DNA from: Penicillus capitatus
Taxonomy: Eukaryota; Plantae; Chlorophyta
Length of the DNA stretch: 64,000 nt
Direction of reading: 5' to 3'
Assembly: GCA_965649825.1 (NCBI GenBank)
Contig: OZ287700.1
Coordinates: 992,001-1,056,000 of the forward strand
Shown: piece by piece, positions 1 to 34,904 of the stretch
How the letters are laid out: each line of letters opens with the position of its first letter
Position numbering within the stretch: position 1 is the stretch's first letter
Notes under the pieces: model-generated
Told to the model about the DNA's origin: nothing
Databases searched by the model: none
The model's input: only the letters and a program-made list of their open reading frames with translations
Position numbers and translations under genes: made by a program

Positions 1-3000
1 GGCGTGTGGCGGCTGGTGTCTGTGTCTTTGGTTTCTGATGTTGTTCTTCATGTGTTGCATCCTTGTTCTGGGAAGGATGGATGGATTTTGAAATGCAATC
101 AACGATTGCGGCGACAGTGGTTGGTGAGACGCCTGGATTTGCCGGAAAGGCTGGTTGTTGTTTGGATCGTTCATGGAAGCAATGAATGCAGCGGGTTCAG
201 GATCTGAGAGGAAGTGGCAGTCAGTCGTATTCGATCATTCCTGGAAGCGAGGCTTGTGTGATGTCCGGTTCTTGTGATGGGGAGGAAGATGTGCTGGATC
301 GGACTCAGAGTAGGTAGAGGACACCGAGATGTACGGTACCACTGGTTTGGTGGCTGTCATACTGGATGGCTCGGAGCGGAGGATGAGGCGGAGCTGGATC
401 TGTGATGTGGCGGACAACGTGCTGGACTGTTGAGTCGGTAGTGGACAGCGAGGTGTCCGGATTCGTGTGAGGTGGATGGAGTGCTGGATTGGTATCTTTT
501 CCTGGTGCAGAGGGCGAGGAGGTATCTTTCTGGTCTGCGAGGAGGTGGATTGATTGATGGACTGGTTTTCTGGAACATGAGGCGACATGCCAGATTCGCT
601 TACAGAGCACACACTACGACGCAGAAGAATTGTTGCAGTACTCGTTGATGAAATGAAAGCCAGCTTGACCGACGCAATGAGCAACAACAAGGTACAGAAA
701 GATGTATGCTTCTTTGCTCGTACCACATCTGCGTTTCAGAACAGACTACATGAAGAAGGCAGAGCATGTCGATCCGGTCACACCGGATCCTGTGGACAGG
801 TGGACTGAGTGATGGCCTGGTCCTTGGAGCAGAGGATGAAGTGGCTGGTGATCTGCAAGAAGTGGATTGTGTGTTGGATATGCCCATGCCCCAGAGCAGA
901 GGATGAAATCCTCTGTTATCTCCGACCGGGTAGATGAGGCAAGAATGAGCTTGACAGTCGTCATGTGCATCGGTAAGGTACAGCCGTACTTCCAACGCTG
1001 TCTAATGCCTGCATTTCAAGGACAGCTACTAAGAGGAGATCGAAGCATGTTCATCCACTCCGATGAGGTGATTTCATGGAATGTTCAGTAAAACAGCATC
1101 GCTATCTGACACGGTAAGGAGACACCCAGACGCAGTGAATACGTGACAGTGACAGCGATTTTTGTGCTGGAAGACTCGACTGCTGGCAGAGAGATCTGCT
1201 GAAGAAAAAAGACGCATCTCTGATGTACCGGACAAGAGATGCAGCTCGACTATCCGTTCTGCAAGGCTTATTGGCATCCTTTTTGATATTTCCTATCCGT
1301 CAGAGAATGTGTAAGGTCCCCGGAGCACGCCTTTCACTATGACATATCATGCTGAGAGCGTTCTTTTCTGCAGGAGGACTTTGTGAAGCGAGCCTGCAGC
1401 ACATACCGCAGTTTCCATCCTGTTGGACCCATTTGAACCAGTCCCGAACTTCAGTTGGATTGTGGATTCATCTTCGACATATGAGCATGTCCTTGACCAA
1501 ACGGCCCTTCGACATGAACAACAATGTAGAATCAACTCCCTCGAAATCCAAACTCGAATGGTAACCTGCAGGCTCCTGGTCTCCTATAGAATCGATGTGG
1601 GAGGCATGGCATTCTAGATGAGTGATTCTGAAGAAGGGAGGAATCATCCACAGCAGTCTGGCTGCATCTAGAAAGGATCTCTGGTCGAAAGTATTGTCAG
1701 AATCATGTCCTTTCCTGGAGATTCAGTCCATCTACTCATACGATGGTGGATTTGCAAACATGCGGTGATCATGACGGCAGAAGAGATGCAACGGAACAGA
1801 AACTCTGGATTCGACGACATCGTTGGGTCTTGATCATCACAGACCTTGACAGACAAGAAACCTGAACAATGACATCGAGTGGCAACATCCTCTATGTTGG
1901 AGAGGGAGAGATCTGGAACAGAATAATGAGAATGCTTGCATGACAGCAGTATCAGACAATGATGCATTCGTCAGTTGTTATTGGCTCTGAAGAAGACAGG
2001 ATTGCAATGGAGGAAGATCGGAGTTTGCCCTTTTGTTATCGGTCTACAGAATACCACGCTTGACGAGATGACAAGGGATCAGGTCGCATGCATTTCTTAT
2101 GCCTTTCACATGGAAAGAAGCTCTTGTTGGATGCAGACCAGCAGGGAGATCTAGAAGAAGTTTTGGTGCCTCGAGGGAACGTTAAACGTTCTTTGGGGCC
2201 ATTCAATGATGGCTTATGCATGAAATTGGAGCAGGGATCAGAGGGACCTGTTTGCTTTGACGAATAGTAAATCAATTGATTCCAGGTATGTTTGCTCTCT
2301 CCTCAGCGCAAAATGAGTCTACATTTCACAGGATCAATGCTGCATTGAAGAAGGATGAGCATGGAGTGAATGTTCGTCCGCAAGACCGAGTCTGAGTCGA
2401 ATAAACATCGACTATCTAAAGCATTTCACTTGCACAGAGGTACATCCTGTCAAAGGAAGATAAAAGCAGTTGGTAAAGGAGATTGCGTCCAGGCCTGACG
2501 AAAGAGGACATGTCAGGAGCGAGGAGTTAAAGGCAACATTTTGATGAGCCTTCGAGACACACTCTTGCAGGCAGTTCATCGAGTGGTTTTGGGGCCAGTT
2601 TCACTGACAACGGCATGATTTAGTCGAGAGAGCATTTCTGGCCTGCTGCATCAGCTTCCTCCAGAGCTCCACTGTTAGAATGGTGCGAAGACTGTGCTCC
2701 TGGAAGATGGACAAGCCGGACTTCTGAGGGTCAGCTTGGAAGCAGTTCATCCGAATCGTCCAGCGACTGACACTTGTGGATTCTCTTCTGGGATCCGACT
2801 CGGGCAACAGGAAGATTGTAAGAGTGAGAGTCACTCTTTCAGAAAGGAGTAGAAGCGACAATGATCTCTTCGGTAGGCCATAACGCACAAAAGGAATAAA
2901 ACTGACGTCATGGGGGACTCAGTGTCTTGACAGGCGGAAGAGGAACGGAGCACTCGGAAAGCACTCATTAAACAAAGAGATCTGGTCCATAAACCTGGAT

Positions 3001-4446
3001 GGACGCATTATCAGACGACGATGGTACATCTACAGGCAGCCAGTGGTTTTGCAGAAGACAAGGTGCGACATAGAGTAATGAGGGGTCCACCTTCTGCCAC
3101 GGCTACTGAATCTCCCTGGATCGGATTCAAAGACATCAGAGACTCTGCGTTTTGGCAGCTGCACTCTAGAGACACGAATAACAAGCCGGGTGGCAGGACT
3201 TCCAGGAACATGAAATCCCCGATGCTGGAATGGACATCAAATCCCTTCGACAGTCGATCCGTCCGAGTTACTACAGTTTAGCCATGATCCGGAAACCTCT
3301 TCGGCTTCGACAAAGTGGGCATGCACGCATCTCAGGTGTGTCTACAGTCCCCTTGGCACTGAGTGAGGATGCACCTGACAGAATCGGAGCGGCGCTGGAA
3401 AGGACGATCACGGCATGAACACTCCTTGACGCCAGACTAGACTTTGGATGAAACTGTGCTGTCTCTCTCCATCTCTTTCTCGGAAGAAGGACAGTCTACT
3501 CGTATCAACAAATGAATCAGTCGACAGAAAACGATGCTGAATCCAGTCTGACAGAGGACGACACATGGATGGAGATGGAAGACGATTTCCAGACGCGACA
3601 GTAAGGCACACTCCTGCAGACCAATCGCCGAATCAAAGCCCTGATGTTACAGGTCCGTCTCGACTGGCAGCTGCAGCACAGTCGTGGATCGTGATTTCTG
3701 AAAATGCTCCATCCACTTCTTCCGGAGCTTTGCATTATGGGTTTGCATCGTGTGCTTTTCGAATATGGACTGGACGAATCCTCAAGCTGCAGCTCGGAAG
3801 CAACCCCTCCATCCGAATGCTCGGCGGACATTCCAGATGTGCCTTTAACGCACAAATCTGGCCTCAATAGGTCGAGCAGGATGATGGACACTCTTCCACG
3901 GAGCAATAGAAGGGCCGATGCTCTCCTTTTCGCCCATGGTAAAGGAGGAAAGGCAGAATAGAATAGCTACGTGTCCGCCTCATCACCAACCTTCGTCAGT
4001 TAAAGAACTCTGCAAACTCGTCCATGCTCAAGGTCGTTTAATCAGGAGAGATGAGAAAGTTGAAAAGTGGCGGGTCCAGAAAGACAGCAGTCTACAGGAG
4101 CCTTTGTCGTAAAGAGGTTCTCTTCCTTAATTCTCTGAGCGCAGGAGTCGGACTGGATCGGGAACAGACACAACAGAGGTCCGATAACCTTTCAGCCATT
4201 GAACATTGTGGAGAACGCATTCGTCAGCTGCCGAAGACAGAGGGAAAGGCTTTCTTGGAGAATTTCGCGTCCTTCTCGTACTTCGAGACCAGCTCAATCT
4301 AGGATCACAGTTTCATTGCAATCGATGATCCACTCCACCCACACCCCCGGCAGCGGCAGCCGCTATCGTCAGGGAGGATGGCTGGGCGACAGGGAGAGCA
4401 GAGACCGTGACATTGGGCAGCCGCGTGATTCGGTCGATGACCTGAG
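1..4446 (+). pseudogene. Degenerate, probably once-coding or transcribed region of unknown family (duplicated at 35302-39782)
   Basis: Only short, broken, protein-like + strand ORFs (587-808, 867-1091, 3021-3281, 3565-3870). Frames and stops differ between the two copies. I recognised no domain, RT or transposase motif. Confidence 0.3.
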
Positions 4447-5044
4447 GTAAGAGTCCTTTGGATCGGCATCCAGGGCCGTCTCTTCTGTCCCCTTTTCTCT
4501 CTCTTCCCCCCTGGATGCCCGTCTTCTTCGATCTGGGCAACGGAATCGGTGCTTCCTTTGCTTGTGATTCTTTCTGCTTCCTTTGCTTCCAGTTTTGTTT
4601 GATTCTCCATCTTTTTGAGTTCGCGTTGTGTGATAAGCTAAACTTCCTCCCAGCGATGCTTGCCTTCTATCTTTAAAATTTTTTACCTTGCTTGACCTCC
4701 TTCTTGTGTTTTCCTGTCTGATTTGCGCATGCCTGGCGGTCTGTCATTGTTTCATTTTTGGTCTATTCTACTTTGTGTGATCTTTCAATCTTTTTTATAT
4801 TGGCCACCGATTCTGTTGCCCCCTGACTGCATGTTTTTTCTCTGTTCTGTACGCCTTTTTCTTTCTCTTCGTACTGTATAACCTGACATTTACTGTGAAA
4901 CGTTCACGTGTCTGTTCTCGTGTCTTTCTTATCCATGTTTCCTCTCTCTCTGTTTGTTGTTCGTTCATTGTGTGTACTTGGTCCCTTTTTGGACCTCCTG
5001 CCTGCATGTCCGCGCAGCGCGTCGGATCCAGAGGACGGTTCCAG
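4447..5044 (+). other. Structured intron-like element, unit 1 (598 nt; GT...AG, closed by a 12-bp stem)
   Basis: GTAAGA at 4447. Left arm GTCCTTTGGATC (4453-4464) pairs with GATCCAGAGGAC (5025-5036), with one G.U. Hairpin GGCATCCAGGG/CCCTGGATGCC (4465-4475/4508-4518). Pyrimidine-rich interior. Hairpin GGTCC/GGACC (4980-4995). Conserved 28-mer at 5002-5029. TTCCAG ends at 5044. Confidence 0.6.
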
Positions 5045-5406
5045 GGATGATTCGCCGATCACACTGGGGAATTCTTACTCTTCCCAGGGCCGCATTTCGG
5101 GAGAGGTCACTGGTGCTCTGCCAGGTTTCAATGTGCGGCGCCGCTAGCCAGAGGTATGCTCCGATATCACAAATGTCACACATACCTCACTTTAATCTTT
5201 CTTGCAGATGGGGGTCTGATGATGAATCCAGACGAGAGGCCTACAGAAAACGATCTCTGGCAACATTCACCATAGAGGTAACCCAATCCAGATATCTTTG
5301 TTTGCATTCGGCTGCAGCGATATCCTTAGGAGGATTGCCGGGCACGCAAGAACTGGATAGCAGATGATCTGCTTGGACGTCCACAGTGGAGTGGCAAAGA
5401 CTCGGA

Positions 5407-5951
5407 GTGCGGCTGTGTTCCGGCGATGGCTTTCGGATCGGCATCCAGGCCGTCTTTTTTCTATGTTTCTTTTTTTTCTCTCTTTCCCCTGGATGCCTGT
5501 TTTCCTCGTTATGTCACGGAGCCTCTCTTTTGTTTTTCATGTGTGATATGTGCCCGTCTCTTTGTTTGCTGTGTTTTTTCTTTGAGCTCATTTCCCGAGC
5601 TTGCATCATTATGTTTTCCTCTGAACGCCTGTCTGAGTTTCTTGCACCCGTTTCTGCGAGTTTTTGTTACCTTGCGGCTCTTTCTGAGTCTGCTTTCTTG
5701 TCCGAATGAATCTCATTCTATTCCTATTCTCTGTCTTCTGTCTGAACCTGCGCTGTCTCTTATTGAATTTGTGAGAAATCTTTCATTTTTTCTGTCTGTG
5801 TCTCTCTGTTTTACGTCTTATGTGTTTCTGCTTCTTGTAAGTTTTCTCGTTTTGCATTCTGTTTTTCAATTACTGGTCCCTTCTTGGACCATCCCCAACT
5901 GCATGTCCGCGCAGCGCGTCGGATCCGAAAGCCGCACTGGACACAATTTAG
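5407..5951 (+). other. Structured intron-like element, unit 2 (545 nt)
   Basis: GTGCGG at 5407. Arm GGCTTTCGGATC (5428-5439) pairs perfectly with GATCCGAAAGCC (5922-5933), and AGTGCGGCT/AGCCGCACT extends the stem. Same GGCATCCAGG/CCTGGATGCC hairpin (5440-5449/5488-5497). Identical 28-mer at 5899-5926. TTTAG ends at 5951. Confidence 0.55.
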
Positions 5952-7114
5952 CCCACTCACCCTCTCAAAACTCTCCCACACTCCCTGTGCGGATGTCACG
6001 TTGACGTGCCACTGGCACAGGCCTCCTTTGTTGCAGCGAGCTCTTCACTATCCATCGAGTAAGTTTACTTCCTACCAATCGATGGTTCTCAATTCTCGTA
6101 TGCAGGAGAGACTACTAAAGGCACCAGTGGAGATGCACTGGACGACGATTTGGAGTTCTTTACATCAGCGATTCCGTGGCCTGTTTTTTGCTTTTCGATT
6201 TTCCTGAGGACTTCGTGGACACTGTGCGCTGTACCATCTATTTCTGTGCACTTTGGTAGAGATACAGCATGGGCTTTGATCTAAGAAGAACCTTAATAAG
6301 TCTGCGCCCTCCCAGGATCTATTTACTCAGAGGATTTTGTCCATGCCAATGTTTGGTCGTGTCTGTGTAGTTTCCACTTTGTTGTGATGATTATGTACTA
6401 GACGCGCTGTGGAAGAGCAGTGAATAGAATGATGACTTCGACTGTGGCGAACGCCAATGAGGATCACTGTGAAGACCTTGTGAACTCTTCTATGCTATGT
6501 TCATGGCACCTGCACACATCTCTGTTCCGGGAACAATTCCGCTTGTCAAAGAATGAGGACAGTGGCTCTTCCGAACACTGAATGAGGATGGAGCTTTTTA
6601 TGCATGAATGTTAACAGATCCGCCGTTTAACTTACTACTTATTGCTCATTGCAAATGCGAGTACCAAAGCTGTTTTCGAGGCTACAGTAGACGGCGGGGT
6701 ATCGAGATGATTGAATCGCCATGGGAGAAATAACCACATCTTACATGCCAATGCGGAAGAGACAATCTAGCGCCTGTGGCCACAAAAAGGCGGAACGAGG
6801 CAAGGGACGTTCGAATTGGTTTCTAGGTGTAGCCGAGGTGTGATGCGACCAGCCATCACTGTCGCAGGTCAAGATGCTTGCTTGCAAATGCTCACCATAC
6901 TCTCGCCAGTGATGGCAATCTCGACAATCGTCTTGTTCATCTCCATCTTTGCCGAAACACGGCTTGACATTAGGATACTAGGACTGTTGTGCATTGACAG
7001 AATGCTGAAGCATGTTTACGCACTCTTCACAGCTCTCAGTCTACTACAACCAATTTCAATCACTCATGTTATATCCAACGTCTCTTAGTCGTACCCTCAA
7101 TTGGTAACACCTCT

Positions 7115-8541
7115 TCAGACTTTTGCGTTTTGTAAGGTCGGGCGTATAAGATTCTTTGAAGGCGCTTTCCCTGACCCACGGTGACCTGAACGGAGGGCCA
7201 GTGGAGTCGACGTGCCAAAGATCGCGTCAGTTGCCCCAGTCGGAGTTCTTCTCATCCCGACATTTCTTCCTACTTTCGCCATCAGCGTACGCGCCGTGTA
7301 TTTCTTCGACAGCGTAGGCAACGTTCTCTTTGGCAGAGTCCGACTGGCCGTCAAGCGTTGGACGCTGTCGCGTTCGTCCAGAGCACTCTTAACATCCCTC
7401 GTTCCATCGATTATTCTGGAAGGTGCATAGCTTGTGTCGGATGCCAGTTCTTTGCCCTTGGAGGCGAGATCTGCCTCCGGCTTTATCTTCTTCTTGTTTG
7501 TGAGAGGTCTGGTCTTGACTTCATCGCACTCCGATCCTGATTTCTTGATCTGCTTTCACAGCAGACAATAAAAGAAGCGGTCAATGGGAACGCGATGACC
7601 ACCTGTTGTTGTAGATCCTCCTGCTCCGTGCGCATGCCATCGTCCTGCGGTTCGAGTTCCTGCTTCTGCCAAGCCAGGAACTCCGCGTCTGCAACGGTGA
7701 CCTCCATCCGAAGGACTGCGTCTGCGACCTCCTTCTCCTACGCAAATTCCACTGTCGATCGGAGCCCATTTGGTAAGGCCGCGTACCGTCACTGCGAGTT
7801 CGGCCTTTCTCTTGGCCAGTTGCGCGTTGACGCCTACTAGCTCAGTCCTTGCCTCGGCGATCTGCTCGCGCAGGTCAGTGAGAACGTCCTTCGTTGCATC
7901 AAGGACATGTGCGGCTGCGAGCTCTCCGTACTTCACGATTCCCACACCGTCGATCACCTCCGCCAACGGACACGCTCAGTCAAGAACGCTTTGGCGGCGG
8001 ACCTACCCCTTCTGTCGAGTTGTTTCCCAGGTAACTTGTTTTCAGTGCCACACCATCCAGGGCCTGCGGCCACACGGATCTGTGTGGAAAACCGGATGGC
8101 AGGCGGTTGCTTTAGAAATCCAGATCGACATTGTGCGCAAGAAGTTGCAGAGTGACATCGCTTGCACAACTTCGTTCAGCTTGTCCATGATCTATCTCTT
8201 CGCGAAGAAGCGAGCGCAATAGCACAAGAACAAACCTCGATTGACGCATTCGAATGCGCTCGTCGGAATCTATCCTTACTCTCGATGTGACATTCTACGT
8301 AGACGTGAGTGACGTTTCTGGTGGTAGTACGCAAGTTCCGGCGCCGACAAGCCAGTGAAGGTTCCCCTTCTTGATTTGTCGAGAGATCGAAACAATCGCC
8401 CCCGTTTGAATCGAAAGCAGATCGCAGACGAGTATTGCCATCATCGTCTCGACTGTCGTGTCTACAGGTATGTTTTCTCCTGACGACGTTTCGCATCGCT
8501 GAGGAAGTTACCGAAAAAAATAGTAACACACCGCTGTCCAC
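7115..8541 (-). CDS. Multi-exon hypothetical protein with a coiled-coil segment (copy A); boundaries approximate
   Basis: Minus-strand ORFs 7556-7966 (LTDLREQIAEARTELVGVNAQLAKRKAEL, heptad-like), 7483-7707 and 7115-7354 are conserved as open frames in copy B. No family recognised. Confidence 0.5.
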
Positions 8542-9245
8542 CGATCTTCCCTCCCTTCAACGACGCGCCGATCAATTGTTTACACGTCAGCAGAAGTTAG
8601 ATTTCATCTTGCTCGATCGCGAGGAGCTACGCTGTGCAAGGTAAGCAGAGGTTTGTCGACCACGATAGCAGATCGATCTGCTCGATCTGCTCGATCAGAT
8701 GTCTGTAGACCATTTCAGGTTTCGGTGCACTCACTATTTACTGCTGACAAAGGTATGAAATGCTCTGCGATCTATCACTCAGATCATCGATCTTGAGATA
8801 CCATGTGTGTTCTGCTCCATATCTCCATGTCTATTACTTTCGCAGTCGGTTCTATTGAATGCCCTTCTCTCTAAGCTACGGCAGCTGATCGAGATTTCTA
8901 GGAAATGTGTGTCACGTCCACCACGACACCGAGGTAAGTGACGAAGGCAGCCACGTTTGCAACACCATCGTCGATGAGCAGCAAGACGAATGCAGTCATA
9001 TATAGCATTCAGTCAGTGCGTATCTGTCAGAGGCCCTGCCTCGAGACAACCGCTGTCAGTGAACTTTCCACCCGTCAAAACTCGCAAAGAGAGCGATCCA
9101 TTTCTACCAGAACATTTCTTCGTGCTCAGTAGAGCGATGTGCCCAACAGCGGTGAAGGTGATGTTCTGGGGCCCTTCTGTGCATCTTTCCTTGCCATCCG
9201 CCTTTTAGAGCAATATATGGTGGACAAGGGCTTCCGCCTGATAAC

Positions 9246-11012
9246 ATGTTGCTCTCACGTCATTTCACTGCCACGACCCTTCTCAAAGAATCCCTGCGAC
9301 GATCGCTAGTTGAACGCGTTCCGTTGTGTCCTTGGCGATCGAGTCAAACGACCCGACGCACTGCGCTGAGGGACGGCCACCTGTCCTCCCGTTTCGTCAA
9401 CGAAAGGTCTAGCCGTGACGAGGCAGCCATGTTTTACTCGGAGCTTCAGCTGGACCGAGCAAGTCATCTCAGGTATTCGAATCGCAGAGACACGCAATGT
9501 CTCAGATGGGGGATGCTTTTTAGGAAGCAACCGAAGGCCTTGGCTCAACTTGCGGCTGCATCGGATGCAAAACTCATTCCGTGGAAGAAGGCTCAGTGTC
9601 TCTTCGTCGAAGAATCGGAGCGTTATACACCCGTATTCCTCACTCCCTTCTCACACTACGAGAAATATCTCGACGCTGCGGTCGGACATCTCTTCGTAGG
9701 TTTCGAACCCGATTCTGAGACGCCCATCTTCGCGGGTACATCTACAGAAGACGTCCGTCAACTGACGAGCAGATCTGTGTGGTAGGTTGCATTGCGGATA
9801 GCGATGCGTTCGCCTCGCAGATTGAGAAGGGCGAGTGGCTTCCCTTAGTGTCCATTGGCTGCAGAATCGACAGACACTATGCAGCACTGCTGGCCACTGT
9901 GAATGGAATGATGGAGTGGCACATGCGCCATCTCTTCTGTGGCATCACAGGAACTGAAACCCTTTCGATTTCTGGTGGCTACGCGCGCCAGTCTCAAACA
10001 ACAGAGGACGTGATGTTCCCCCGCATCGATCCAGCCATCATCTGTCTGGTGACGCAGGGAGAGTACTGCCTGCTTGGCAAAAAACTGTCATGGAAGAATT
10101 CAAAGAGGTGGGTCCTCGCACTTCAGGTCCTGCCGCGATCCGTTCGAGGAACGGGTCAATAGGTACTCTATGCTTGCCGGATATCTGGAGGTGGGCGAGA
10201 CCTTGGAACAAGCTGCCGTTCGTGAAGTCTTTGAAGAATCAGGCGTCAAGGTTCGCCTCCCTCGCTGTCGGCCGCAGCTGCATTTTGCAACGGCGTAGAT
10301 CGATGTGGAGTCTTTGGAGTACATAAGCAGTCAGCCATGGCCCTTTCCCCAGTCTCTAATGGTCGGATATATTGCCTCCCTGCCGACGCGGACAGATGCA
10401 TCAGCGACCCTACAGGAAGAAGCCGAGCAAGCGGCATCGGAGTCGGGAATCAGAAAAGATGAACTAGATCATTACCTGGGTGCTACACTGCCCAAGCCTG
10501 TTCCGGAGCCAGAAGAGATGGCAGACGTCCGATGGTTTCATTATCGCTACATGAAGGAAGCCCTTTCAGACCCAGGCACCGGATTCCAGATGCCGGGCAG
10601 CAATGCTATCGCCAATCAGATCACCATGAAATGGATGGCCAGGATCGAGTCGGAGCACGTCGAGTGGCCGGGAGATCACTTCCAGGATGTCCAGATCGAC
10701 GAAGGGCGATTCAAGTATATTCTTGCACGCCTGGAACAGGGCGATCAGTCGAAAATCGTCGTCCGAGGAAAGAAAGACCGTTCCTATCACACAAATATCT
10801 TTGAGGAGCTCAAGTTCGAGGCAGACGCCGTTGGATTGGAGGTCACTCCTCTCGGAGGTGGACGGATCGAGCACGACATCGCAGCGGAAGATATTTCGAT
10901 CTACGGATACTCCTCGGCCTTCGGTGCGGCTGTCCATCACGTTGCAGCCGTTCTATGTCGGCGTAATTATCCTTTCTACAAGAGAATTCACATATCGTAC
11001 AAGGGATACTAG
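9246..11012 (+). CDS. NudC/NUDT12-19-type NADH pyrophosphatase fused to a C-terminal Janus/Ocnus (PHPT1-like phosphohistidine phosphatase) domain, with an N-terminal transit-peptide-like leader
   Basis: After splicing ~50-nt GT-AG introns (e.g. 9473-9523), the protein has [12 protein letters not shown], the Nudix box [23 protein letters not shown] and the NADH-PPase signature SQPWPFPQS. It then has [44 protein letters not shown]-stop, which matches PHPT1/Janus motif by motif. The leader is Arg/Ser-rich. Confidence 0.92.
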
Positions 11013-11140
11013 ATACTGGCTCCGTATGATTTCTTTGAAAGTGTAAACGTGTGCCATCGAAAGTTCAGACAGAGCGTTCTTTCTTCTTTTAAGATCAGAG
11101 CGTTCACATACGTATGAAGATCGAAACGATGATGCGAAGA

Positions 11141-11480
11141 TCATCGATCAACGGCGGTCATTGCAGAAGAGGGAGTCGAGAGGTTTGATCTGACGTTCGA
11201 TCGACATCGATCAACGGCGGTCGTCGTGCAAAAGATGGAATCGAGAGGTTTGATCTGACGTACATCGATCGACATCGATCAACGGCGGTCGTCGTGCAAA
11301 AGATGGAATCGAGAGGTTTGATCTGACGTACATCGATCGACATCGATCAACGGCGGTCGTCGTGTACAGAACAGATAGTAGTCGATAAGTAAGACATCGG
11401 AAAATCGATCGATCGATCGATCAATTGCAGCCGTCGTGCAGAAGAGGGAGTCGAGAAGTTTGACATGACAAACATCGATC
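11141..11480. repeat. Minisatellite, 63-68 bp unit, about 3.5 good copies plus one degenerate copy
   Basis: Unit ATCGATCAACGGCGGTCGTCGTGCAAAAGATGGAATCGAGAGGTTTGATCTGACGTACATCGATCGAC. The AACGGCGG anchors fall at 11150, 11213, 11281 and 11349. Confidence 0.9.
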
Positions 11481-11759
11481 AATCGTCGATGGATCTATTC
11501 GTTTCCTCATCCTATAGAAACAACCAGATCGGCAGAGTATATAAATGGTACTCGAAATTTTAGCCGAGTCCCATCGAAAACGTTCGCATAGACGCAACAA
11601 CGAAACGTTCTTTCTTTCACAGCAAGGTAATCATATATCGTAATATACGTCGGAGAAACACCAAACAAGCTGTTCGAAGACCTTAGAACATATTCTCAAT
11701 TTCCATCCCCTGCCTTTGCGGCTCAATCGGATAGGATGCTTCAAGAGGTGATCAACACA

Positions 11760-13985
11760 TGTCTTTTCCTGTGAACAAGACCTCAGCCCGTCTCTACCAT
11801 GTCGCCTTTTCGTGCTCGAGTCAGCAAGAATTCCCTGATGCGTTCCACCACACTGCAGATGTAGGAGTGGCCACACATCGGTCATCTCTTCTGTCTAAGT
11901 TTGTACAGATGAAGGTGCTGGATCCTGGTGAGAAGGTTCTTCTGTGCGATCTGACCGAGTGTCCTTGGCACATCGCCTGACAAAGGCGCTATACTGCTCA
12001 TGCTTGCATCACTTTGTAGCGATGCTCCATCAAACAACGCCTCTTCGATTTCAGTTCCGGACTCTGTTGCTCTATGTATTGACGGCTCCGGGGCGAAATC
12101 GACTTCTGTGTCTGCGACGTCGTCTACAGCATCCTCTGGTGGAGGGGACATCACAGGTTCGGTTGAAATCTCATCATCGGACGTTCGAGAAACGGCCTTT
12201 AGAGTTGCAGACGCGCTTTCGTCCATCATTTCTTCGTCGTCTTCGAAGGAAACGACTGAGGCAACGATCACACGATCTCCCGATTCGTCCGCTAGAGCAG
12301 CTGTTACCGCCGGTGGAGATATTTCCGATGGCTGTGCATCGATGAAGTCTTCTTCGACGCCGCTGTGTAGAACAACGTCCGAGAAATCGATATCCTCGCT
12401 TGGCGATTCCTCGATCGAAGGCCCTTCACCGTCCAACTCCGATTCGAGAGGGCTTCCTCGGACATCCGATTGAGTGTACGAGGGCTGAGCCGAAACTGAG
12501 AAATCGCTGTCCTCCTCTCCTGGGACGTATTCGTCGCTGACACTCGAACCGGAGGCGATGTCGATCTGCTCCAGAGGATAACGCCAATCGTCGTCTTGTG
12601 GTTCTGTCGCGACAGGGAATTCAATGTCATCGCTCAGTCGTAGCGTCTCTTCAGAAATTTCTTCCTGGCTCGACGAAAGAGCATACGCATCATCAGCCAT
12701 CGGAAAACTATCATCTTCGGTGCTAGGAAGAGCGTCGATCGGCTCTGCATCTCTCGGTATGTTGTCGACCTCTATCAAATCGGATGGGACTGGAGTAGGA
12801 GGATCAGCCACAGCGATAAGGCTGGTCTCTTTTTCCGTCACTGCCTTCGTTTCGCCGCCTCGCTGACCCGAAACACCAACATCGTCTGCTCACCACATCA
12901 ACTCAATGCGTTCGACGATAGGCTACGGGGACTCCGCTCACCGACATCTGTGGATTCTATTCCGCCGTCATCTTCGGCGATGGATCCGCGACTGGTGTCG
13001 AAACGCTCGTCGAAGATGCGCAGCTTTGGAGAGAAGGGCAAATCCAGAACGGCGATCAGCTTCATGTCGGTGGCAGCGCCGGACGGCACAAACATCGAGA
13101 AACGCGAGGCGGTGCCATCATAGCTTCTCTCGACGATCTCATACGTTCGAGCAATCAACAGCTTTCTTCCGACATCGAATGGCTGTGACTGTTCTTCATG
13201 AGTGAGCTTTATTTGCAACACCGTCGTGTTGGCATTCAAAACGTCAGAGAGCTCCACAGCGTCGATCTCTTCTTCGAATCGCACGTAGACGCTAAACTGG
13301 TAGCAGTGATTCTTCTGCAATGCATGACCGGTATCGAATGTGCCTCTGACGTCGGTGACGATCGTGACGCTGCTGAAGATTCGCCACGGATCGAGGACGG
13401 TAACTGTGGCGACTGGATGTGGATGACAATTGCTGTCGCGTCTTAGGATGGACGCTAAACGCATCATCGCTGCGTCGCGAACGGCAGGCGTTGCTGTGAG
13501 CTAATCGACATCGAATGAGGAAGACACGTGTGTTCTGTTCTCGAAGCGAACGGGCGTTCTTGATGTTCATGAACACGATTTTGATCGTACTTCGGATTCA
13601 TTAACATGAACCCATCCTACTTAGGCAAACGCGCTTGTCATCGAATCTAGACTTTTTTTCTGCTGTCTGGATGAATCTAACGATTTCCGGCGTCGCCAAA
13701 TTACCTCCCGTCGTTTCCTCTTGTCGACGCGCATCGATCGCCGTGATGAGATTCGCCGATCGCCTTCGAGTGTCGATCGCCGTCACATCAATCGCCTTGG
13801 ACGATGGAGAGAGAATAAAGTTGGTTCCTATGCTGTGATCATGCGTTCCCACAGACAGGACGAACAGAATGAATGACTAGCAAAATAACAGTCCAGCAGA
13901 CGAACTAGACGATCCATCTCCGGTGTGACTACAAACAAATAAACGATCGTTCCATACAGCAAAATGCGAATTGTATATAGCGAGC
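11760..13985 (-). pseudogene. Truncated pseudogene copy of the acidic-stalk membrane protein (intact paralog at 46776-50523)
   Basis: TAG at 13905-13907 replaces the TGG of copy B (49620-49622) in the first hydrophobic segment, and further indels follow. A 650-bp deletion at GTGG 11867-11870 removes the second TM helix. The 5' exons are absent because the duplication ends here. Confidence 0.8.
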
Positions 13986-18227: not shown

Positions 18228-21200
18228 ATGTCGTACAACAACAGTGGCGACCGCGTCCTCACGTCCGCAGTGTTCCCTCTCGTCGCCGTCTTAAGCACGG
18301 ACGTGCGCAGTAGGTTCGGAACACACCTCTCGAGCGACTCCACTGGACAAAACTGTCGTTTTGTATTCTGCCAATCAAAAAAGAGATGCCGTGAGCTTCA
18401 ACAGAATTCGTAAGGACGCGTGCCTCGTATGATTCGCTTCTTGCCTTGTAGAAGTCAGAGAACCTTCGCACTCTCCTCCAGTCTGACGAGTCCACCCCAG
18501 CAGCAGTCTCCGGTAAGGTCCCGCTTCTCCGAATCCGGTCAAGTGTGTACGTTCGGCGACTATTAGAGTTTGTCTGTTCTCTGGCGAGAGAATCGGTTAA
18601 CCGTTACAGACAAGAGGACGAAGTGACGTGGCTCCTGGATGATGGCTTTATAAGCGATGACGAAGTACATCTGCAATCGATTATCAACTGCACGACAGAA
18701 GGAGACGCTATCGTGTTCGATACGACCCGTCACATCAAACTGACGTCGACCGTCATCATCCCGTGGAACCTCACCCTCAGCGGTGGCGTCAAACGACCAG
18801 AGCGCATCGATGGGATGATACGCAGATCAGCGCGAAAGGCGACATTCATATGTCCTAAGAAAAACTCGGGCAGCTTCCTCATACAGTAAGACAGTAGCTC
18901 GACAAGGCAACTGTTCGATCTCGTATATGCTCAGGGCCAGCACCGTCACCTTGGCCAACATCGCATTCAAGAACTGCAGATTCGACGCTGTGGACGAACC
19001 TCAGGCGATCGTCGAAGTGACAGGATGCCAGAAGAAGGAAGAGTCTGGCGTCGTTGCGCTGCACCACGTCACCTTTCGCAACAACACGCTCATTGGATCC
19101 ACAGCACTGCGTATGTCGACACCGTCGTGCCGCGAGCTGGAGATGTTTGACGTGGAAATCGCAAACAACGAGTGCTCGAGCGAAGCGTGCGGCGCCCTTC
19201 TCGCACAGAAGAATCAGATCACTAACTGCTCGGTCGTCAACAACACTGTCACTGGCGACATAGAACAGCATCCTTTTCTGCTGTCTGCTCCCGCATCGTC
19301 CGATACCGTCGTCGAAGGGCTCAAGGCACGCGGCAACAGTCTCACGGTTCTTCGCGTGCAACACGGAGGGCATCTTTCATTGTTGAATTCGTCCTTCACT
19401 CAGAACGCTGTCGGAGAAGAGACCTCTGAATTTCCAGACAGCTCTTGTGTGCATCTGTCGCTGGCTTCTGTGGAGATCGTTGGATGCGTCTTCGATGAGA
19501 ATAGAGGCGAGCGGGGTGCAACGATCGCTGCCACGAAATCAAACATCACTCTTTCCGACTCCAGTTTCGTGAGGAACAGTGCCAGCACGACGGGTGGCTG
19601 CATCCACGCAGCGGGGTCGATGGTGGATCTCAGAAAGACGACGGAGGTCAACAACAGCGCCGAAACTGGCGGCGTCCTGTACGCGTTGGATTCAACGGTA
19701 AAGCTCAAGGATGTGAATATGTCTCGCAACAGCGCTTTCCACGGCGGCTGCATCTATGCGATGGCCTCTACGGTTCGATGTGTGCTAATGGATGCCAGCG
19801 ACAACAAGGCGAGGATCGACGGCGGCTGTGTTTCGGTGCGGAACTCGGTTGTGGTACTCAACAAGACAACTGCGAGATGCAATGAGGCAGGCGTGGATGG
19901 TGGCTTTATGCGTGCCTGGAATTCGACAGTGACGATGCGCGAGACCAACGCAGTCAAGAACAGCGTCGAAGTCGACGGCGGGTTTTTTGCGGCACGAAAC
20001 TCGACGGTGGCGTTTATACAGACAAATGCAACAGGCAACAGAGCTGGGTTTGATGGCGGATTTATCCGAGCGTTGGAACTCGACAGTGACACTGAAGGCG
20101 GCGACGGTGGTGAACAACACGGCCGAAAGAGGAGGCTTTATCTACACCTGGTTCTTTTCGACCATTAAAGTGGACGAAACGCGTGCGACGGACAACAGTG
20201 CAGAGCTCGGCGGGTGTATCTACGCAAGGGACTCGAGGTTGAAGCTCGAGAGAATGAACGTGGAGAACAATATCGCGGAGGAAGACGGCGGTTTGGTCTA
20301 CGCCACGAATTCGACCGTCGAGGTGCAACAGACGAACGCCGCCGACAATCGTGCCGATCGGGGAGGCTGCATCTACGCACGAGACTCGACCGTCGAGCTC
20401 GACCGTGTGAACGCGACAAACCATTTCGCCAGAGAAGACGGCGGCGTCGTCTACGCCACGAACGCGACGGTCATCACCCGACAGACAAATGCATTGGACA
20501 ACAGCGCCGGTGTCGATGGCGGATTTCTCTACGCGACGAATGCCACGATCGAGATGCAACAGACAAGCGCGGTGGGGAATAGAGCGGACAGGGGCGGCTG
20601 CATCTACGTTGAGAATGCGACGATGCGGATTGCGTCCTCCAGTTTTTCCACCGGCGAATCAAACAGTTCTGGCGGCTTCATAGCAGCGGCGAAGAACACC
20701 TCCGTTTTCGTTCGTGACTCCTTGATGACTGATGGATGGTCTGCCAGAGGCGGAGCGGTGTCATTAGATGACAAGTCCTATCTCGAGGTGCGCCATTCTA
20801 ACATTACGCAGTGCAGCGCGGACAACAGCGGCGGTGGTGTCACGGGAAGCCGCGACTCGACGCTTCTGTGCGTGGACTGTCTCTTTTATAACAACACAGT
20901 GGGGAACGGGAATGGCGGCGCTCTGCACTTCGATGCCGAATCTGATCACGCACTGAAGCTTCAACTGGTCCGAAGCCGAGTGGAGAACAACGCGGCCGAA
21001 TTCGGAGGTGACTGGCGTCCTGTTGGACAGCAAATAACAGTTTGGGTTCTCTTTCAGGGGGAGTTTATTTCGTTTGCGGTCAGAAGAGTGAGGAGTGTCT
21101 GGCACAGAGTGTCGAGTGTCCGTTCATGGCCTTGATCAACACAACGTTCTCTGGAAACGCAGCTGGTGTTGCCGGGGGAGCAATTTTCGCAGGATATTCG

Positions 21201-23635
21201 GAAGCCATCCGTATTTACGACGCTCCCTTTTCAGAAGGCGAAGACATCGATTTCCTCGAAGAAGAAGAGTGGAAAGCGATGAGTGTTATTGAGGAGGTCA
21301 GCGATATCTGTCCTTCACCACAGAGCAATCGGGCAGGCGTCTATGGCCATGCTATTGGAACTTTTGCACTCAGGGCGGAGCTAACCGTCGAACAGACAAA
21401 CAAGACGTCGATCGAAACGCGCGGAGAGGAGTACGCCATTGATCGGTATCGCAGCGGCGAGGAGCTGCCGTCCATGATCGTGCGATTCGTGGATGGACTC
21501 GGTCAGGGACCTGCACGAAGCCATACAATCGTCAAGGCCGTTCTCTCGTCGGCTGACAACTTCCTTCATCGACCCATTGAACTCTCTATGGACGACGGCG
21601 TAGGAAACTTCTCCAAGATCGAAGGCTACGTTCCATCGGGCAGTTACTTAATGACCATGAGCTTCACGGGTACAGCATTGTTTGAGAGCCTCTCGATACG
21701 TGTCATCGTGAAAGCGTGCTCCATCGGAGAAGTTCTGTCGAAGACCAGATCACTCTGTGTGGATTGCAGCAGCACGAGCTACAACTTCCATCCGGAAAAG
21801 GATACGAGTTGTGCGCCCTGTCCTGAGCGCGGCAACTGTGAAAACCATGTCATCACGCCCGATGATGGATACTGGCACAAAACGCCATGCAGTCGTCATC
21901 TCCAGAGATGCTTAACATCCCACGCCTGCAAATTCAAAGGCCGCTCGGAAGAACTGCAGAAACGCACCGAAGACGTAGAAGACTGTGATCTGGAGGAAGG
22001 ATGGATTGCAGAATACACTCAGGCGCAGTGCGCTAAGGTATGACACTCTTTTCGGCGTCAAGGGGTGCATCATCGGTGTGGATCTGCTCAGGGTCACAAG
22101 GGACCGCTCTGTGGATCTTGTGAAGACGGATACAGTTCGGCACTGTCTTCGAAATGCCGGAAGTGTATGGGCGGTTTCGTCAATGTGGTCTCCATTCTGG
22201 CATCGGCTGTTCTTCTGGTGGCCATCATGGGCGTCACCATCGATGGCACACTGAACGTCCTATGCACAAATCTGACATGCATTCACAGCCAGAGATCGCT
22301 AGCAGCAAACCTAAACAATGGTCCAGCCACGCAAGATGTCAGCACAGAGTGACGTCTACCGAAGTCTGAAAGGGTGCACCGTAGGACTCGGAGCTCAATG
22401 GAGTCAACGCACCTGAACTCGTTCTTGCTAAGTGGAAAGCTGTCGAAATGTTCAAGGTCTACATCCCGTCAGCCTCCATCTTTGCTCGACCATTGTCTGC
22501 AGATAACCTTGAGCTACATCCAAGTGACGGTTCTGCTCGCCTCGCTGGAGGTTGGGTGGTCCATTCCTCTGATTGTCATGGCGGAAGCAGCAGGTACGAT
22601 CGTGCATCCCGTTTCGTTCTCGACATCGCCGTTGTCGCAGAGTACATGAGCGGTCTTGCCTCCGAAGGCAATCGACGGGCCATTGTCTGTCTCAACTCCG
22701 ATCCGTCATCGTTGCATCCAACGACCCTGGCCACGATCATCAACGTCTGTGTCATCCCTGTCGCCGCATTTCTTTTCTGGGCGGCGTTGTGGACCGTCAG
22801 ATCTCTCTGCCAACGCAAAGATGCTTCACGACACTACCTAGCAAAGAGATGCCTTCTCTCTTTGATGGTGCTCTGGTACATTACCTTCGTGCCGGTACTG
22901 AAAGTCGCTTTGAGTGTCGGCCTCTGTGTTGACGTACATGACTCGCCGTACATCGAGGATGAGAGCACGACTAAGTACTGGGCGGTGGACACGAGCATCG
23001 AGTGTCATCAAGGAGACCATGCTCAGCTGTTCGGTTTTCTCGTCCTTACTTTCGTGTGTCCTGTCTATGGCGGTCTGCTCGTCCTCTTCATTATCATCCT
23101 CAAGATCTGCGTTCGGGACCTCATGAACGTAAACGGTTGGGCTTATGAGACGACGGGCTTCCTCTATCGAAGCTATCGACTCGGACGACTGCGTTACTGG
23201 GAACTGGCGATCATTGTTAGAAAAGGAGTGATCGCGTTTCTCGTATTCTGTGCACACCTCTTTGACAGTGTGATACCGATCACTGGTGTCGCGCTTTTTA
23301 TCACAATCGCCATCGTCGCACAGATTTTGACGAATCCCTACCGCGAGAGTTTCAAGAACTTGAACACGTTCGAAGTTGCGTCGCTGTTCGTATCTCTGAT
23401 GACAACACTGATTGCGATCATGCTCAAAGAAGACGATTTTCCGGAAGATTACACCCGAGGTGTCGCCACTCTCGTTTGCCTGTTAATGAATCTTGGCGCT
23501 CTTCTCTTTTTTTCGTACTGGGCTTTGAAAAACTGGGTCGTCTATGCAAAACTCCGCCGCGATGCAAGGAAGAATCGCATTTTTGTAGGAGAGCTAGCGG
23601 TCTTGGATGCTGGTGTACTTGATATGCGAAATTAA
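18228..23635 (+). CDS. Pmp-repeat (GGxI / FxxN) right-handed beta-helix + Cys-rich region + multi-TM (TRP-C-like) receptor-like protein 1; carries a +1 frameshift; start approximate
   Basis: ORFs 18545-18889, 18927-20168, 19987-21135, 21042-22043 and 22448-23635 are joined by ~50-nt introns. About 19 GG(C/F/A/V)(I/V/L) turns. CSIGEVL..CVDC..C..CP..GYWHKTPCS. TM block with GFLYRSYR..YWELAIIVRK and PY..LNTFEVASL. Extra T at 20073-20074. Confidence 0.88.
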
Positions 23636-24447: not shown

Positions 24448-27400
24448 ATGGTCGCGATGTTCCGTTTGTTTCTTCTCCTGTGTTTCCTGCTTCGCTGCTC
24501 CGTTCTCCTCGTCGCAGCCACGGCGACAACGCCGCATGGCAAAACCGTGGCAACAAAGACTAAAAATAACCAAGTAAGGATGGATACCGATGTCGACTTC
24601 CTGTCTTAGGCGTTCGCGCAGGAACGCGTTCACACTTCGCTGTCTTCTAAACGATCCCAGACGCGGCGTCTAACGCAAAGAGAAGAAGACACTCAGGCGA
24701 CGGTTACAGCAGAACGCAACTCAGTGAATGTAGACGGTACAGAGAGCAGGACCATACAAGAAGAATGTCATTGTTCGCTGTCTAGATTACGAATGCTCCC
24801 TGACAAGAACACAGCGAAGGAGCTACCTCAATGCCGCCAATCGCACTTGGCATGTCGACGACCGTGTCCTCGATGCCATTGACAACGATCTGCAGACCAT
24901 CGTCAACTGCACCGATCCAGGAGACACGTTGCTCTTCGATCTCAGCAAGACACTTCGTCCCGCAGCCCCGATCACCATTCCGTGGCATCTCACAATCAGC
25001 ACGCAGACAGACAGCACTCGAACAATCGATGGTATCTACCCCAGCACTGCAAAGAAGACGTCCATCACCTGCCCCAGCAGAAGAGAAGGCGTCTTTCGCG
25101 TGAGGTGATCGCTTCGGAGAAATCTCTGCTGGCATCGGTCACACATATGTTCTCTACGTAGGTCCAAGAGCGTCCTCCTGGCAAACCTCCAATTCGAAGG
25201 CTGCTCTCTCAGATCATCTGCATCAACTGGGGCAGTCGTGGAAGTCGCTGAATGCTCGTCGTCTGAGCGCGTTCGAAAAACGATACAGCTGCATCATGTG
25301 AGCTTCAGGGGTAACTCCCTGTTCGGGACTGTCGGTCTCCGAATGCAATCTCCGTCCTGCTCGACTCTGGAAATCGTCGATTTCGAATTCGAGAACAACA
25401 CATGCAGCGATCGATGCGGCGTCATCCTGTCAACCCGAAATCGGCTTCGAGATATCCGTGTGCGGCGCGTTCGGTTGTCGGGCTCCATGAACGCTCGGCC
25501 GGCCGTGTTCTATGCCCACACCGGATCACAGACTTCTGTCAAACGCATGGCTGCGGTTGCTAGCGAGTGGCCGCTTCTGTACATCCGAGGCGGCGACTTG
25601 GAGGTGTCAAACGCCACGTTCACTCGAAACACGTTCTCGAGTGGCTTCCCATTCAGTTCGTGCGTTCATCTGGAGCACGCAACGGCCACCCTCAAGGAGT
25701 GCCGCTTTCGAAACAACGCAGCCGAAAACGGAGCTGCTGTTACTGGATCGCACTCGAATGTGACACTGGCGAACAGTCGCTTCGAAAAGAATAAAGCAAA
25801 ACGTGGAGGAGCAGTGAACATCCGCGACGGCAGTTCGATCACCATCCGATCGTGCACCTTCACCTCGAATGAAGCTGAGGAAAACGCAGGCGTCTTGTCG
25901 GCTTCGGCATCCCACGTGCACATCCAGCAGTCCGATTTCGCCGAGAACTCGGCGGACTTCTCATCTGGGTGTCTGTATCTGAACGAATCGAGCACTCTCG
26001 AACTGCTGGACTCGACGTTTGACCGGAATCACGCCATTTACGCTGGTGCCATTGAAATGGATGAGTCGTCTGGAAATCTAACGTCCTGCGATTTCAGAAG
26101 CAACGTCGCCTTTGTCAATGGAGGCTCCCTGTTTGTCCAGAATGGAAGTCTCTCCTTACAAAACTGCCATCTCTTCAATGGATCTGCAGCAAACGGAGGT
26201 GGTGGCATCTATGCCATCGCCTCCAGAGTATCTACACGAGGCAGTCGCTTTTCCAACAATACTTCCGGCGAGAACGGCGGCGGCGTTGCATGTACAGACC
26301 ATTGCAAACTAGAAGAAGTGAATGCTACGTACTTGAATAACACTTCCAGATATGGAGGTGCCCTCTACCTGAAGCCGAACTCCACAGCGAACTTCGAAGA
26401 CTGTCGTTTCCGCAAGAACGTCGCGTTCAGATCGGGTGGAGCTGCGTATGTCGAGAACTCGACCTTCAATGCCAATGACTGCCAGTTCTCGAAGGGCAAC
26501 GCCAGCTACGGCGGATTCATTTTTGTTATAGGCGGCGAAATTAATGTCTTCAACGTGATTTTCAATCAGGCGTGGGCTGATTATGGCGGCTGTGTTCGAT
26601 CGGAAGAATACTCTGGAGTCATCATCCGAGACGCCCAGATGACATTGTGTCGATCGAATTCGACTGGAGGTGCCGCGGATCTGACAGCAAGCACTTACGG
26701 AATCATCCGCAACGTTCGCTTCTCGAATAACTCTGCGCGTGCGACTGGAGGCTCCTTGCGAGTGTCTATGACGAATATCAGTGTAAACCAATGTGACTTT
26801 GCTGATGGAAGCGCAGGATCCGGAGGGTTTGTCTACTCTTGTTGCTCATCTCGGCTGTACTTGAATGACGTGATCATGAAGAACAGCAGTGCCGGAACCA
26901 GTGGCGGCGGTCTGTACGCAACATCAGGGACCGTCATTGCCAGAAATGTTTCTGTGCAAAACGCCACTGCTTCGTGGTCTGGAGGTGGTATCTATCTCTA
27001 CAGTACAGTGACGGAACTTGACACCGTCGAGATTCTTTCGAGTATTGCTAATAATGGCGGCGCAGTCTACATGAGCGACACCAATGTGACGGCACATCGA
27101 TGGACACTGAAGAATAATTTCGCAGCGAATTATGGAGGAGCTGTGAACATGGCGGAGTCCAACTTCACGGGACGAGAATTGGAGTTAGACGGAAACAACG
27201 CCATCCTTCGAGCGGGTGGCGTGTACGCGTCAGAATCCAGTCTGCACCTCGAAGACTCGATGATCAGAAACAGCGTGGCTGAGTTCGGAGGAGCGGTGAA
27301 CCTTCCAGTCAATAGCACTGGGGTCTTTGTCAACGTGACATTTGAAGACACATCTGCATCGTTCGGTGGTGGATCCGCGTATATCGCAGAGTCGAACACC

Positions 27401-30400: not shown

Positions 30401-31647
30401 ACCGAGCTTGCAAAGTGGAAGGCCGTTGAGGTCTTCAAGGTAGAGAGATCTCAGACCTCCTGCTGTATCAGCGTCGGTGTCCTGCAGATCACCGTCAACT
30501 ATCTTCAAGTAACGGCTGTTGCCGTCGCCATCAATGCAAAATGGAGCCTGGCTCTGATTGCTCTGTTCGAGACGGCAGGTAAGACGCGAACAGCTTGGCG
30601 ACGACACGGACAATACCTGTGTGTGGTTTGCTAGAGTTCATTAGCGGCATCACATCTGAATCTGTGACGCGTTCAGTGGACTGTCTGGTTCCGTCGGGAT
30701 CTTCGGTGGAGCGATCTATCGCCAGCGTACTGATCGATGTCGGACAACCCCTCGCAGCCATTCTTGTTTTCGCCGTCATCTGGCTGGTGATCCAGATACA
30801 TCACAAGGAGACGTCGATATACCTCCTGAAGAAAGTCATCCTCAGCGCGCTTGTCGTTTTCTACATCAGCTACATCTCTCTGAGCAAGACCCTTGTCAAT
30901 ATCCTCAACTGCATCGAAGTCCACGATTCCACACTGGTCGAATTTGACACCGTGACAGACTACTGGGCCATGGATACCGGCATCGTCTGCTACGAAGGAT
31001 CTCATGCACTGCTGGTCGGTCTCTTGGGGTGGCCCTTCCTCATCTTCTTCACGTTTGGCTTTCCCTTAGCCGTGGCCTACCTCATCGTCAAGAACATCTC
31101 GGAGGATTTCAAGGAGGGCTGGATCTATGAGACATCGGGTTTTCTGTATCGCTCCTATCGTAAGAGGTATGTCTTCTGGGAATCTGTCATCATGCTTCGC
31201 AAAGCCGTCCTTGCCGTCGTCGTCGTTTTTTCTTACCCACTGGGCGCCAACCTGCAACAGGTTCTCAGTGTGCTTGTCTTGGTCCTCGCTCTCTACTCTC
31301 AGATGATCTGCCGTCCCTACCGTCCAGAATTCGATCGACTGAACGAAATGGAGAGCGTTTCTATTCTGATCTCCCTGTTGACATTTGTCTCGAGTATTTT
31401 CTACGACGACGAACGCGTTTCCTATTCTGCTCGTGTGCTCGTCACGATCGTCATCGCATTCTGCAACATTGCACTGTTTATGAGTCTCCTCATTGTCTTT
31501 TTCATTTTCCTTTCAAAGTACCTCAAAACTGTATTGAGCACAGAGGGCGTCTTTCCTGATCCTGAGACTAAGCCGTGCTCTGTGTTTTGGTTTTATTTTC
31601 TCCATCGTGTTGTTAGGCCGATCAAAGCTGCGATCTTTGGTTCCTAA
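24448..31647 (+). CDS. Pmp-repeat beta-helix + Cys-rich + about 9-TM receptor-like protein 2
   Basis: Signal peptide MVAMFRLFLLLCFLLRCSVLLVAATA. The N-domain (DNDLQTIVNCTDPGDTLLFD..TIPWHLTIS) is homologous to gene 1. A 1246-codon ORF (25238-28978) has about 40 GGx(I/V/L)/FxxN turns. CSVGEVP..CEAC..CP.NANC..GYWHRTPCS. TM region GFLYRSYRKRYVFWESVIMLRKA and PYRPEFDRLNEMESVS. TAA at 31645-31647. Confidence 0.92.
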
Positions 31648-34820: not shown

Positions 34821-34904
34821 CTGTTTGTTTAGTTCATTGGGTGGGAAATTCCGCCGGTTAACGCGCCCTCATCTCCTTTGTTTTATTAGTGTTTTCGCAT
34901 TGTT

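Follow-up and report, generated by a model that had tools for sequence, protein, structure and literature searches.

Two long, U-rich segments lie close together on the + strand of a 64,000-nt stretch of Penicillus capitatus contig OZ287700.1 (assembly GCA_965649825.1; the whole stretch analysed is called the window here), and each begins with GT and ends with AG. Unit A (4447-5044, 598 nt, GTAAGA...CCAG) and unit B (5407-5951, 545 nt, GTGCGG...TTTAG) are putative long introns; these first copies, A1 and B1, recur as A2 (39783-40379, + strand) and B2 (40736-41269, + strand) through a segmental duplication of ~90% identity between window positions 1-13970 and 35302-49682 (with L125 5975-9098 also part of it), which runs ~3 kb beyond the left edge of the window, comes to ~17 kb in total and adjoins a USP7-like gene at its end. 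A third A-B pair (A3 and B3) is found on another contig from the same sample (L004, 27x coverage), which is 91.5% identical to window 30653-41454. The four copies that the original prediction, made from the letters of the window, had reported are all present, but they are not independent, being two paralogous units doubled by the segmental duplication, with the L004 pair in addition.

The host is, by its closest named protein matches, an Ostreobium-like siphonous green alga: the best named relatives of a mitochondrial carrier open reading frame (ORF) in the protein database, where the closest matches reach at most 84%, belong to Ostreobium quekettii (73% identity), with other Chlorophyta ranking next. 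The GC content of the window (~50%) is close to the 52.4% reported for the O. quekettii genome (bioRxiv 10.1101/2020.07.21.211367). Ordinary introns in the window, checked through protein homology, measure 30-56 nt overall, in line with the ~50 nt first estimated; a NUDIX-Ocnus gene has introns of 56 and 50 nt, the carrier gene has one of ~40 nt, and the gene upstream of the second locus has introns of ~30, 48 and 56 nt. These verified local introns carry weak donors (GTGGGT, GTTCGC and GTAGGT).

Units A and B share one architecture. At the 5ˊ end of A, a strong donor-like site AG/GTAAGA (4445-4452) stands one base ahead of the closing stem, whose 5ˊ arm GTCCTTTGGATC (4453-4464) pairs with the 3ˊ arm GATCCAGAGGAC (5025-5036) to give 12 bp, eleven of them Watson-Crick pairs and one U.G. 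It is followed by hairpin 1 (GGCATCCAGGG, a 33-nt loop and CCCTGGATGCC; 4465-4519, arms 4465-4475/4509-4519), which is invariant in six of six units and has the consensus GGCATCCAGG(G)/(C)CCTGGATGCC in A and B. Further in, A has a 17-bp long-range helix of its own (4535-4551 with 4805-4821) that was absent from the original list of features, then a GGTCC/GGACC hairpin (4980-4995) and the conserved 28-mer CTGCATGTCCGCGCAGCGCGTCGGATCC (5002-5029 in A1), before the acceptor end TTCCAG/G. In B, the closing stem consists of a 5ˊ side (5414-5439, core GGCTTTCGGATC at 5428-5439) and a 3ˊ side (5922-5948, core GATCCGAAAGCC at 5922-5933), and reaches ~24 bp when its bulged outward extension is counted; inside it lie hairpin 1 (5440-5497, arms 5440-5449/5488-5497), a TGGTCC/GGACCA hairpin (5874-5891) and the 28-mer (5899-5926 in B1). 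All of these features are read on the + strand. GT and AG are present in six of six units, and the closing helix begins 6-7 nt past the donor GT and ends 6-8 nt ahead of the acceptor AG. The donor 8-mer AGGTAAGA has just four occurrences when both strands of the window are counted, and A1 and A2 account for two of them, each one base before the stem. The motif GGATCGGCATCCAGG has four matches in the window against 0.14 expected, and the 28-mer four against 0 expected. The GT...AG limits proposed at first (4447/5044, 5407/5951, 39783/40379 and 40736/41269) and the shared plan of a 12-bp closing stem, a 10-11-bp hairpin and a GGTCC/GGACC hairpin were all recovered from the sequence as described; in the 28-mer, first described as identical, the B2 copy differs by one base, an A>G change that lies in both the 28-mer and the stem and yields a U.G pair.

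Between the units, the spacer alternates exon-like non-coding segments (5045-5153, 5208-5278 and 5320-5406; 93-99% identical in three copies) with mini-intron-like segments (5154-5207 and 5279-5319), again on the + strand. With the mini-introns removed, 5047-5360 contains a short ORF (MIRRSHWG...) from the first ATG past A, of which ~49 residues are common to copy 1 and L004; the copy 2 version carries a frameshift, and the whole may be either a small upstream ORF or a frame with no meaning. No other stem-closed long segment was seen in the 64-kb window, where inverted repeats otherwise occur at chance level only, and an inverted-repeat pair at 16415/16952 was rejected as a further unit, having no features in common with A and B. 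A + strand pyrimidine-rich stretch on L004 (19651-19900) lies inside a long minus-strand ORF (1802 aa) and has none of the unit motifs; it is probably a purine-rich coding low-complexity region rather than a third unit.

The units stand out by composition and by the way in which they diverge. They are the only 200-nt intervals with at least 68% pyrimidine in the 64 kb (T 46-50%, A 11-13%), and the limits of the pyrimidine-rich tracts coincide with the limits of the units. Among the three paralogous copies (two in the window and that on L004), exon-like flanks are 93-100% identical, unit end modules 89-97% and unit linkers 67-94%; the U/C-rich, poorly conserved linker of the original description is borne out. 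For the mini-intron at 5154-5207, which retains its GT and AG, identity is 63-85% and the alignment has 11 indel columns, and for that at 6059-6106 identity is 71-96%; two of the three neighbouring mini-introns diverge more than their flanks. This conservation mosaic is in our view the best evidence, indirect as it is, that a + strand transcript is spliced and that the ends of the units are under constraint. Between A and B, the 28-mer is identical at 28 of 28 bases and the GGATC plus hairpin 1 at 25 of 25, though the linkers are barely alignable (~50-70% around the modules), so that the sequence itself is constrained and not pairing alone.

The helices were assessed in an alignment of the end modules of the six units (A1-A3 and B1-B3), covering 27 pairs in three shared helices, or 162 cells. 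All 27 pairs form in six of six units (100% of the cells), and pairing falls to 20-59% when partners are shifted by 1-3 columns. Three closing-stem pairs are doubly changed between A and B (UA/GC, CG/UA and UA/CG), and two further pairs vary through wobble only. Within the outer 7 bp of the stem, three of seven positions differ between A and B, and the inner GGATC/GATCC alone is common to both. Gene conversion from arm to arm was rejected as the keeper of this complementarity because the arms are only 12 bp long. In the A-specific 17-bp helix, three positions vary among A1-A3 and all stay G.U or G-C on the + strand. Taking all helices together, seven of the eight non-Watson-Crick positions are G.U on the + strand and none of the eight stem changes is a transversion mismatch; the remaining position is a C.A at the terminal pair of B3. 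The original prediction had listed three such positions, all G.U pairs on the + strand; the one in the closing stem of A is confirmed, and in the enlarged set the B3 C.A is the only exception. The same strand preference is seen in folding energy, where + strand RNA is favoured over - strand RNA by 2.9-9.2 kcal/mol for seven of seven helix variants. When the units are folded alone, A gives z scores of -4.7 on the + strand and -2.2 on the - strand, B gives -4.1 and -4.2, respectively, and the closing stem of each appears in both the minimum-energy and the centroid structures.

The homology of A and B is not limited to the units themselves. The ~50 nt upstream of A (4353-4402, + strand) are homologous to the upstream flank of B (5310-5364), with a z score of 5.7 for the local alignment and a score reached by none of 300 shuffles; the duplicated sequence consists of this flank and the unit only. 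No counterpart of the spacer 5045-5309 or of the downstream flanks was found in the A/B flank alignments, and a simple head-to-tail tandem repeat was rejected. In two contigs of a related species (L001 and L002, from ERZ26696514; flanking genes ~81-83% identical), the sequence ahead of the unit matches the upstream flanks of both A and B. Since the upstream flanks are homologous and the related species matches both, the pair arose through local duplication of old resident sequence rather than by transposition of the exact unit. Identity among the three copies, two in the window and one on L004, is strongly mosaic: some blocks match one copy at 97% and another at only 52-62%, a pattern that suggests recurrent gene conversion or replacement in patches.

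The related species has a single unit at the syntenic place (~L001 5551-5950), recognised by a 130-nt match to the region just past hairpin 1 (E ~1e-6). It is a strongly pyrimidine-rich tract ending at the unit limits, like A and B; its hairpin 1 is weakened and its 28-mer is degenerate. The unit begins ~170-190 nt past the stop codon of the upstream gene, and TGTAA stands directly 3ˊ of it. A third pair type at stem position 2, read from the aligned arms of the related species, was not counted because the alignment is too uncertain.

We tentatively favour, at a little short of an even chance, the view that A and B may be long spliceosomal introns of a non-coding + strand transcript (an untranslated region (UTR) or a long non-coding RNA (lncRNA)), bridged by the closing helix. 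Splicing itself, and with it the role of the helix, we infer from the features of the sequence. Formation of the closing helix would loop out the ~500 nt of fast-evolving linker and set donor and acceptor side by side, at the distance found in a mini-intron; the 23 unpaired nt of the 28-mer, which adjoin the helix internally on its 3ˊ side, would end up ~28 nt from the acceptor, and the branch site would probably lie in the 28-mer. With the ends so placed, A and B could be handled by a spliceosome adapted to very short introns. A structure that helps such a spliceosome with a long intron was among the readings originally offered, and it is the one that best fits the 30-56-nt ordinary introns, the donor of A, the + strand helices and the conservation mosaic.

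Several observations weigh against this proposal. The donor of B (GA/GTGCGG) is weak, though no weaker than the verified local GTGGGT and GTTCGC, and the related-species sequence aligned to it reads GAGGCGG, so that GT has become GG; neither the fold (z -1.05) nor the closing duplex of the related unit is significant. No yUnAy-type branch-site motif was recognised in the last 70 nt of A or B. When the units are removed, with or without the mini-introns, stops remain in every frame in all three copies, and frameshifting indels between copies occur throughout 1-7000; the context looks non-coding, which makes the failure to restore an ORF uninformative rather than contrary. In partition-function folds of 1.6 kb, the probability of the A stem is 0.13, 0.97 and 0.75 in the three copies, and that of the B stem is ~0, other pairings outcompeting it. 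Finally, the covariation is real but thin: the three compensated stem pairs put forward at the outset are confirmed in the six-unit alignment, yet all of them come from one phylogenetic contrast, that between the A and B paralogues.

The strongest competitor, which we consider unlikely though it deserves serious attention, is that A and B are never spliced and are structured U-rich domains of a mature + strand RNA (a long 3ˊ UTR or lncRNA), in which the helices, the 28-mer and hairpin 1 would serve protein binding, stability or localisation. The place of the related unit, shortly past a stop codon and followed by TGTAA, is 3ˊ UTR-like, and the + strand ORF upstream of A stops at 4300-4302, 145 nt before the unit, and all three copies retain the stop (TAG, TAA and TAG); that no ORF is restored by removing the units, and that the 28-mer and the hairpin are kept in sequence and not merely in pairing, would also be expected of such domains, and the + strand bias suits them equally well. 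The label "UTR" is itself uncertain, however, because the upstream ORFs lack a protein family (Pfam gave none for 10 upstream ORFs, nor for most large ORFs of the window) and are frameshifted between copies. Unspliced domains would moreover leave unexplained why a rare, strong AG/GTAAGA stands one base before the stem of A and a CAG/G eight bases past it, and why the interiors of the units evolve like mini-introns beside conserved flanks.

Improbable in our judgement is an origin of A and B as DNA-level insertions, whether as a miniature inverted-repeat transposable element (MITE), a foldback element, an introner or an element that a site-specific recombinase placed in a GGATCC-centred palindrome; the halves of the target would then account for the outer 7 bp of each stem, in place of a selected RNA helix. 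The arrangement that suggests it is a direct repeat, GGATC, bracketing the conserved core: once the core is taken out, what remains is a 20-bp palindrome that is perfect or nearly so, GGCTTTCGGATCCGAAAGCC in B and GTCCTTTGGATCCAGAGGAC in A, and the two "targets" resemble each other. Precedents exist, as introners with 8-20-nt inverted repeats at the intron ends are known in Amoebophrya (PMC7789003) and proliferating introns with terminal inverted repeats (TIRs) and no target-site duplication (TSD) in Hypoxylaceae (PMC8469720). No empty GGATCC-centred palindrome was found in the window or in L001-L004, however, and no TSD flanks the stems, the bases outside them being AGA/GGT in A and GAT/GCA in B. 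The outermost bases, the most conserved part of true TIRs, are variable here; A and B have homologous upstream flanks, and a degenerate unit with a homologous 5ˊ flank occupies the same locus in the related species. The + strand bias of wobble pairs and energies would also be unexpected of a DNA repeat.

No dispersed copy was found in the window, L001, L002, L004 or the 9 kb left of the window (~125 kb of related sequence), and exact 24-mer scans gave no match in JGI metagenomes, IMG/VR or GTDB genomes. The hairpin pattern GGCATCCAGG-N20-50-CCTGGATGCC matches more than 120 metagenome contigs (JGI), which were rejected as units and are chance palindromes, none having a flanking GGATC or the post-hairpin motif. 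A spurious 192-aa ORF running through B, of the kind that gene callers place on the units, served as a probe for further copies: a word-indexed search of 5.8 billion proteins retrieved only the paralogous locus L004, and a full HMMER search of 1.84 billion representatives only the query itself and two low-complexity matches. The MITE- or introner-like element of the original prediction is thus disfavoured by the flank homology, the missing TSD, the variable outer stem, the orthologue at the same locus and the lack of further copies in the sequence searched.

It is similarly doubtful that A and B specify a structured RNA particular to this lineage, perhaps a circular intronic RNA or one that stays stable after excision; an intron-hosted structured RNA was also among the readings originally offered. 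The closing stem, hairpin 1 and the 28-mer would make up its functional core, with the U-rich linker as a spacer, and A and B would then represent a new RNA family in introns of a non-coding host gene, kept at this locus across Ostreobium-like species. The comparison with Rfam suggested earlier returned no match when 3500-7000 was run through cmscan on both strands with E up to 1. The start of B, GTGCG, resembles the 5ˊ end of group II introns, yet no domain V/VI model matches it. ARAGORN reported no tRNA-like genes, and Tandem Repeats Finder only a 12-nt, 2.4-copy array. Least probable is that A and B are neutral, fast-evolving low-complexity DNA, locally duplicated and kept alike by gene conversion, with incidental stems and splice-like ends: frequent gene conversion is shown by the mosaic identity of the three copies, the stems are not always kept in long-context folding and the related species has no significant structure, but against it stand two different unit-specific 7-bp stem extensions that are both fully complementary (chance ~4^-7 each), modules identical at 28/28 and 25/25 bases amid ~50-70% identical sequence, eight stem changes with seven + strand wobbles and no transversion mismatch, and an extreme composition kept at one locus across species.

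If A and B are introns, their closest known counterparts may be the zipper stems of Saccharomyces cerevisiae, helices reported to enhance splicing (PMC2536676, PMC12350175, PMC12311795). In RPS17B and RPL7B, as in the units, a helix in an unusually long intron brings the donor near the branch or acceptor region, and compensated pairs are found between homologues. The yeast stems pair the donor-proximal region with a site upstream of a clear UACUAAC, whereas in A and B only 6-8 nt separate the helix from the acceptor and a branch consensus cannot be seen. The units further differ in their host, a green alga with 30-56-nt introns, in their non-coding context and in the additional invariant 28-mer and hairpin 1, and their splicing and its dependence on the stem are predicted. 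Introners of Amoebophrya have an inverted repeat (8-20 nt) at the two ends of the intron and a predicted hairpin that joins the exon boundaries (PMC7789003), a likeness to A and B; they form dispersed repeat families whose boundaries have direct repeats of 3-5 nt and whose splice sites are often non-canonical, in contrast to two paralogues at one locus with GT-AG ends, no boundary direct repeat and a local-duplication origin. The internally symmetrical (stw)introns of Hypoxylaceae and fungal introner-like elements also exceed the usual intron length of their genomes, have TIRs or a predicted structure that is stable, and lack a TSD (PMC8469720), but their terminal repeats are 45-55 nt long and scores of copies sit in unrelated genes, as against stems of 12-24 bp and no detected proliferation. 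A MITE or TIR DNA transposon would share the ~550-nt length, the inverted-repeat ends and the lack of coding capacity; it differs from the units in all the respects given above (TSD, terminal bases, homologous flanks, same-locus orthologue and dispersed copies), and in the bias of their pairing to one strand.

Were splicing to occur, A and B would offer a natural example of how a spliceosome of 30-56-nt introns copes with an intron about ten times longer by means of a looping-out helix, which the two paralogues would preserve with different bases. Such an example would belong to the ulvophyte green algae, whose intron biology is, to our knowledge, almost unstudied. The intron interpretation predicts that splicing depends on the stem and that the 28-mer is the branch region. 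The related species has a U-rich unit without strong stems or the same donor, and A and B could for that reason capture a stage at which UTR sequence gives rise to long introns. Even if unspliced, they would be a conserved, strand-specific structured RNA module.

A segment of ~7.5 kb without a recognisable protein (window 32186-39650, and 1-4320) is present here and on L004 and absent from the related species, in which the corresponding point (L001 5362) is ~20 nt short of the stop codon that ends the upstream gene; from exactly there on, the C-terminal residues encoded differ between the species. Downstream, the 3ˊ half of a convergent minus-strand gene encoding a coiled-coil-like protein has been swapped for unrelated sequence in both window copies (6130-7443 and 41454-42728); this half is present in the related species (L001 5943-7369) and in part on L004 (11002-11944), and the 5ˊ exons remain in the window (7443-8294).

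The NUDIX-Ocnus gene is present as two paralogues (9246-11012 and ~45150-46283), each a fusion of a NUDIX (NudC-like) and an Ocnus/Janus (phosphohistidine phosphatase-like, PF05005) domain; they are 74% identical in the C-terminal part, and the fusion is also found in a few algal and fern-assembly proteins. Just downstream of the first (11142-11490) is a short array of ~68-nt tandem repeats, which includes a palindromic (GATC)n microsatellite at 11403-11426. An intron-free ORF of 1246 aa (25238-28978) contains Chlamydia polymorphic-membrane-protein repeats (PF02415, E 2e-12) and is kept at ~72% in the related species, and similar repeat ORFs lie at 18927-23635.

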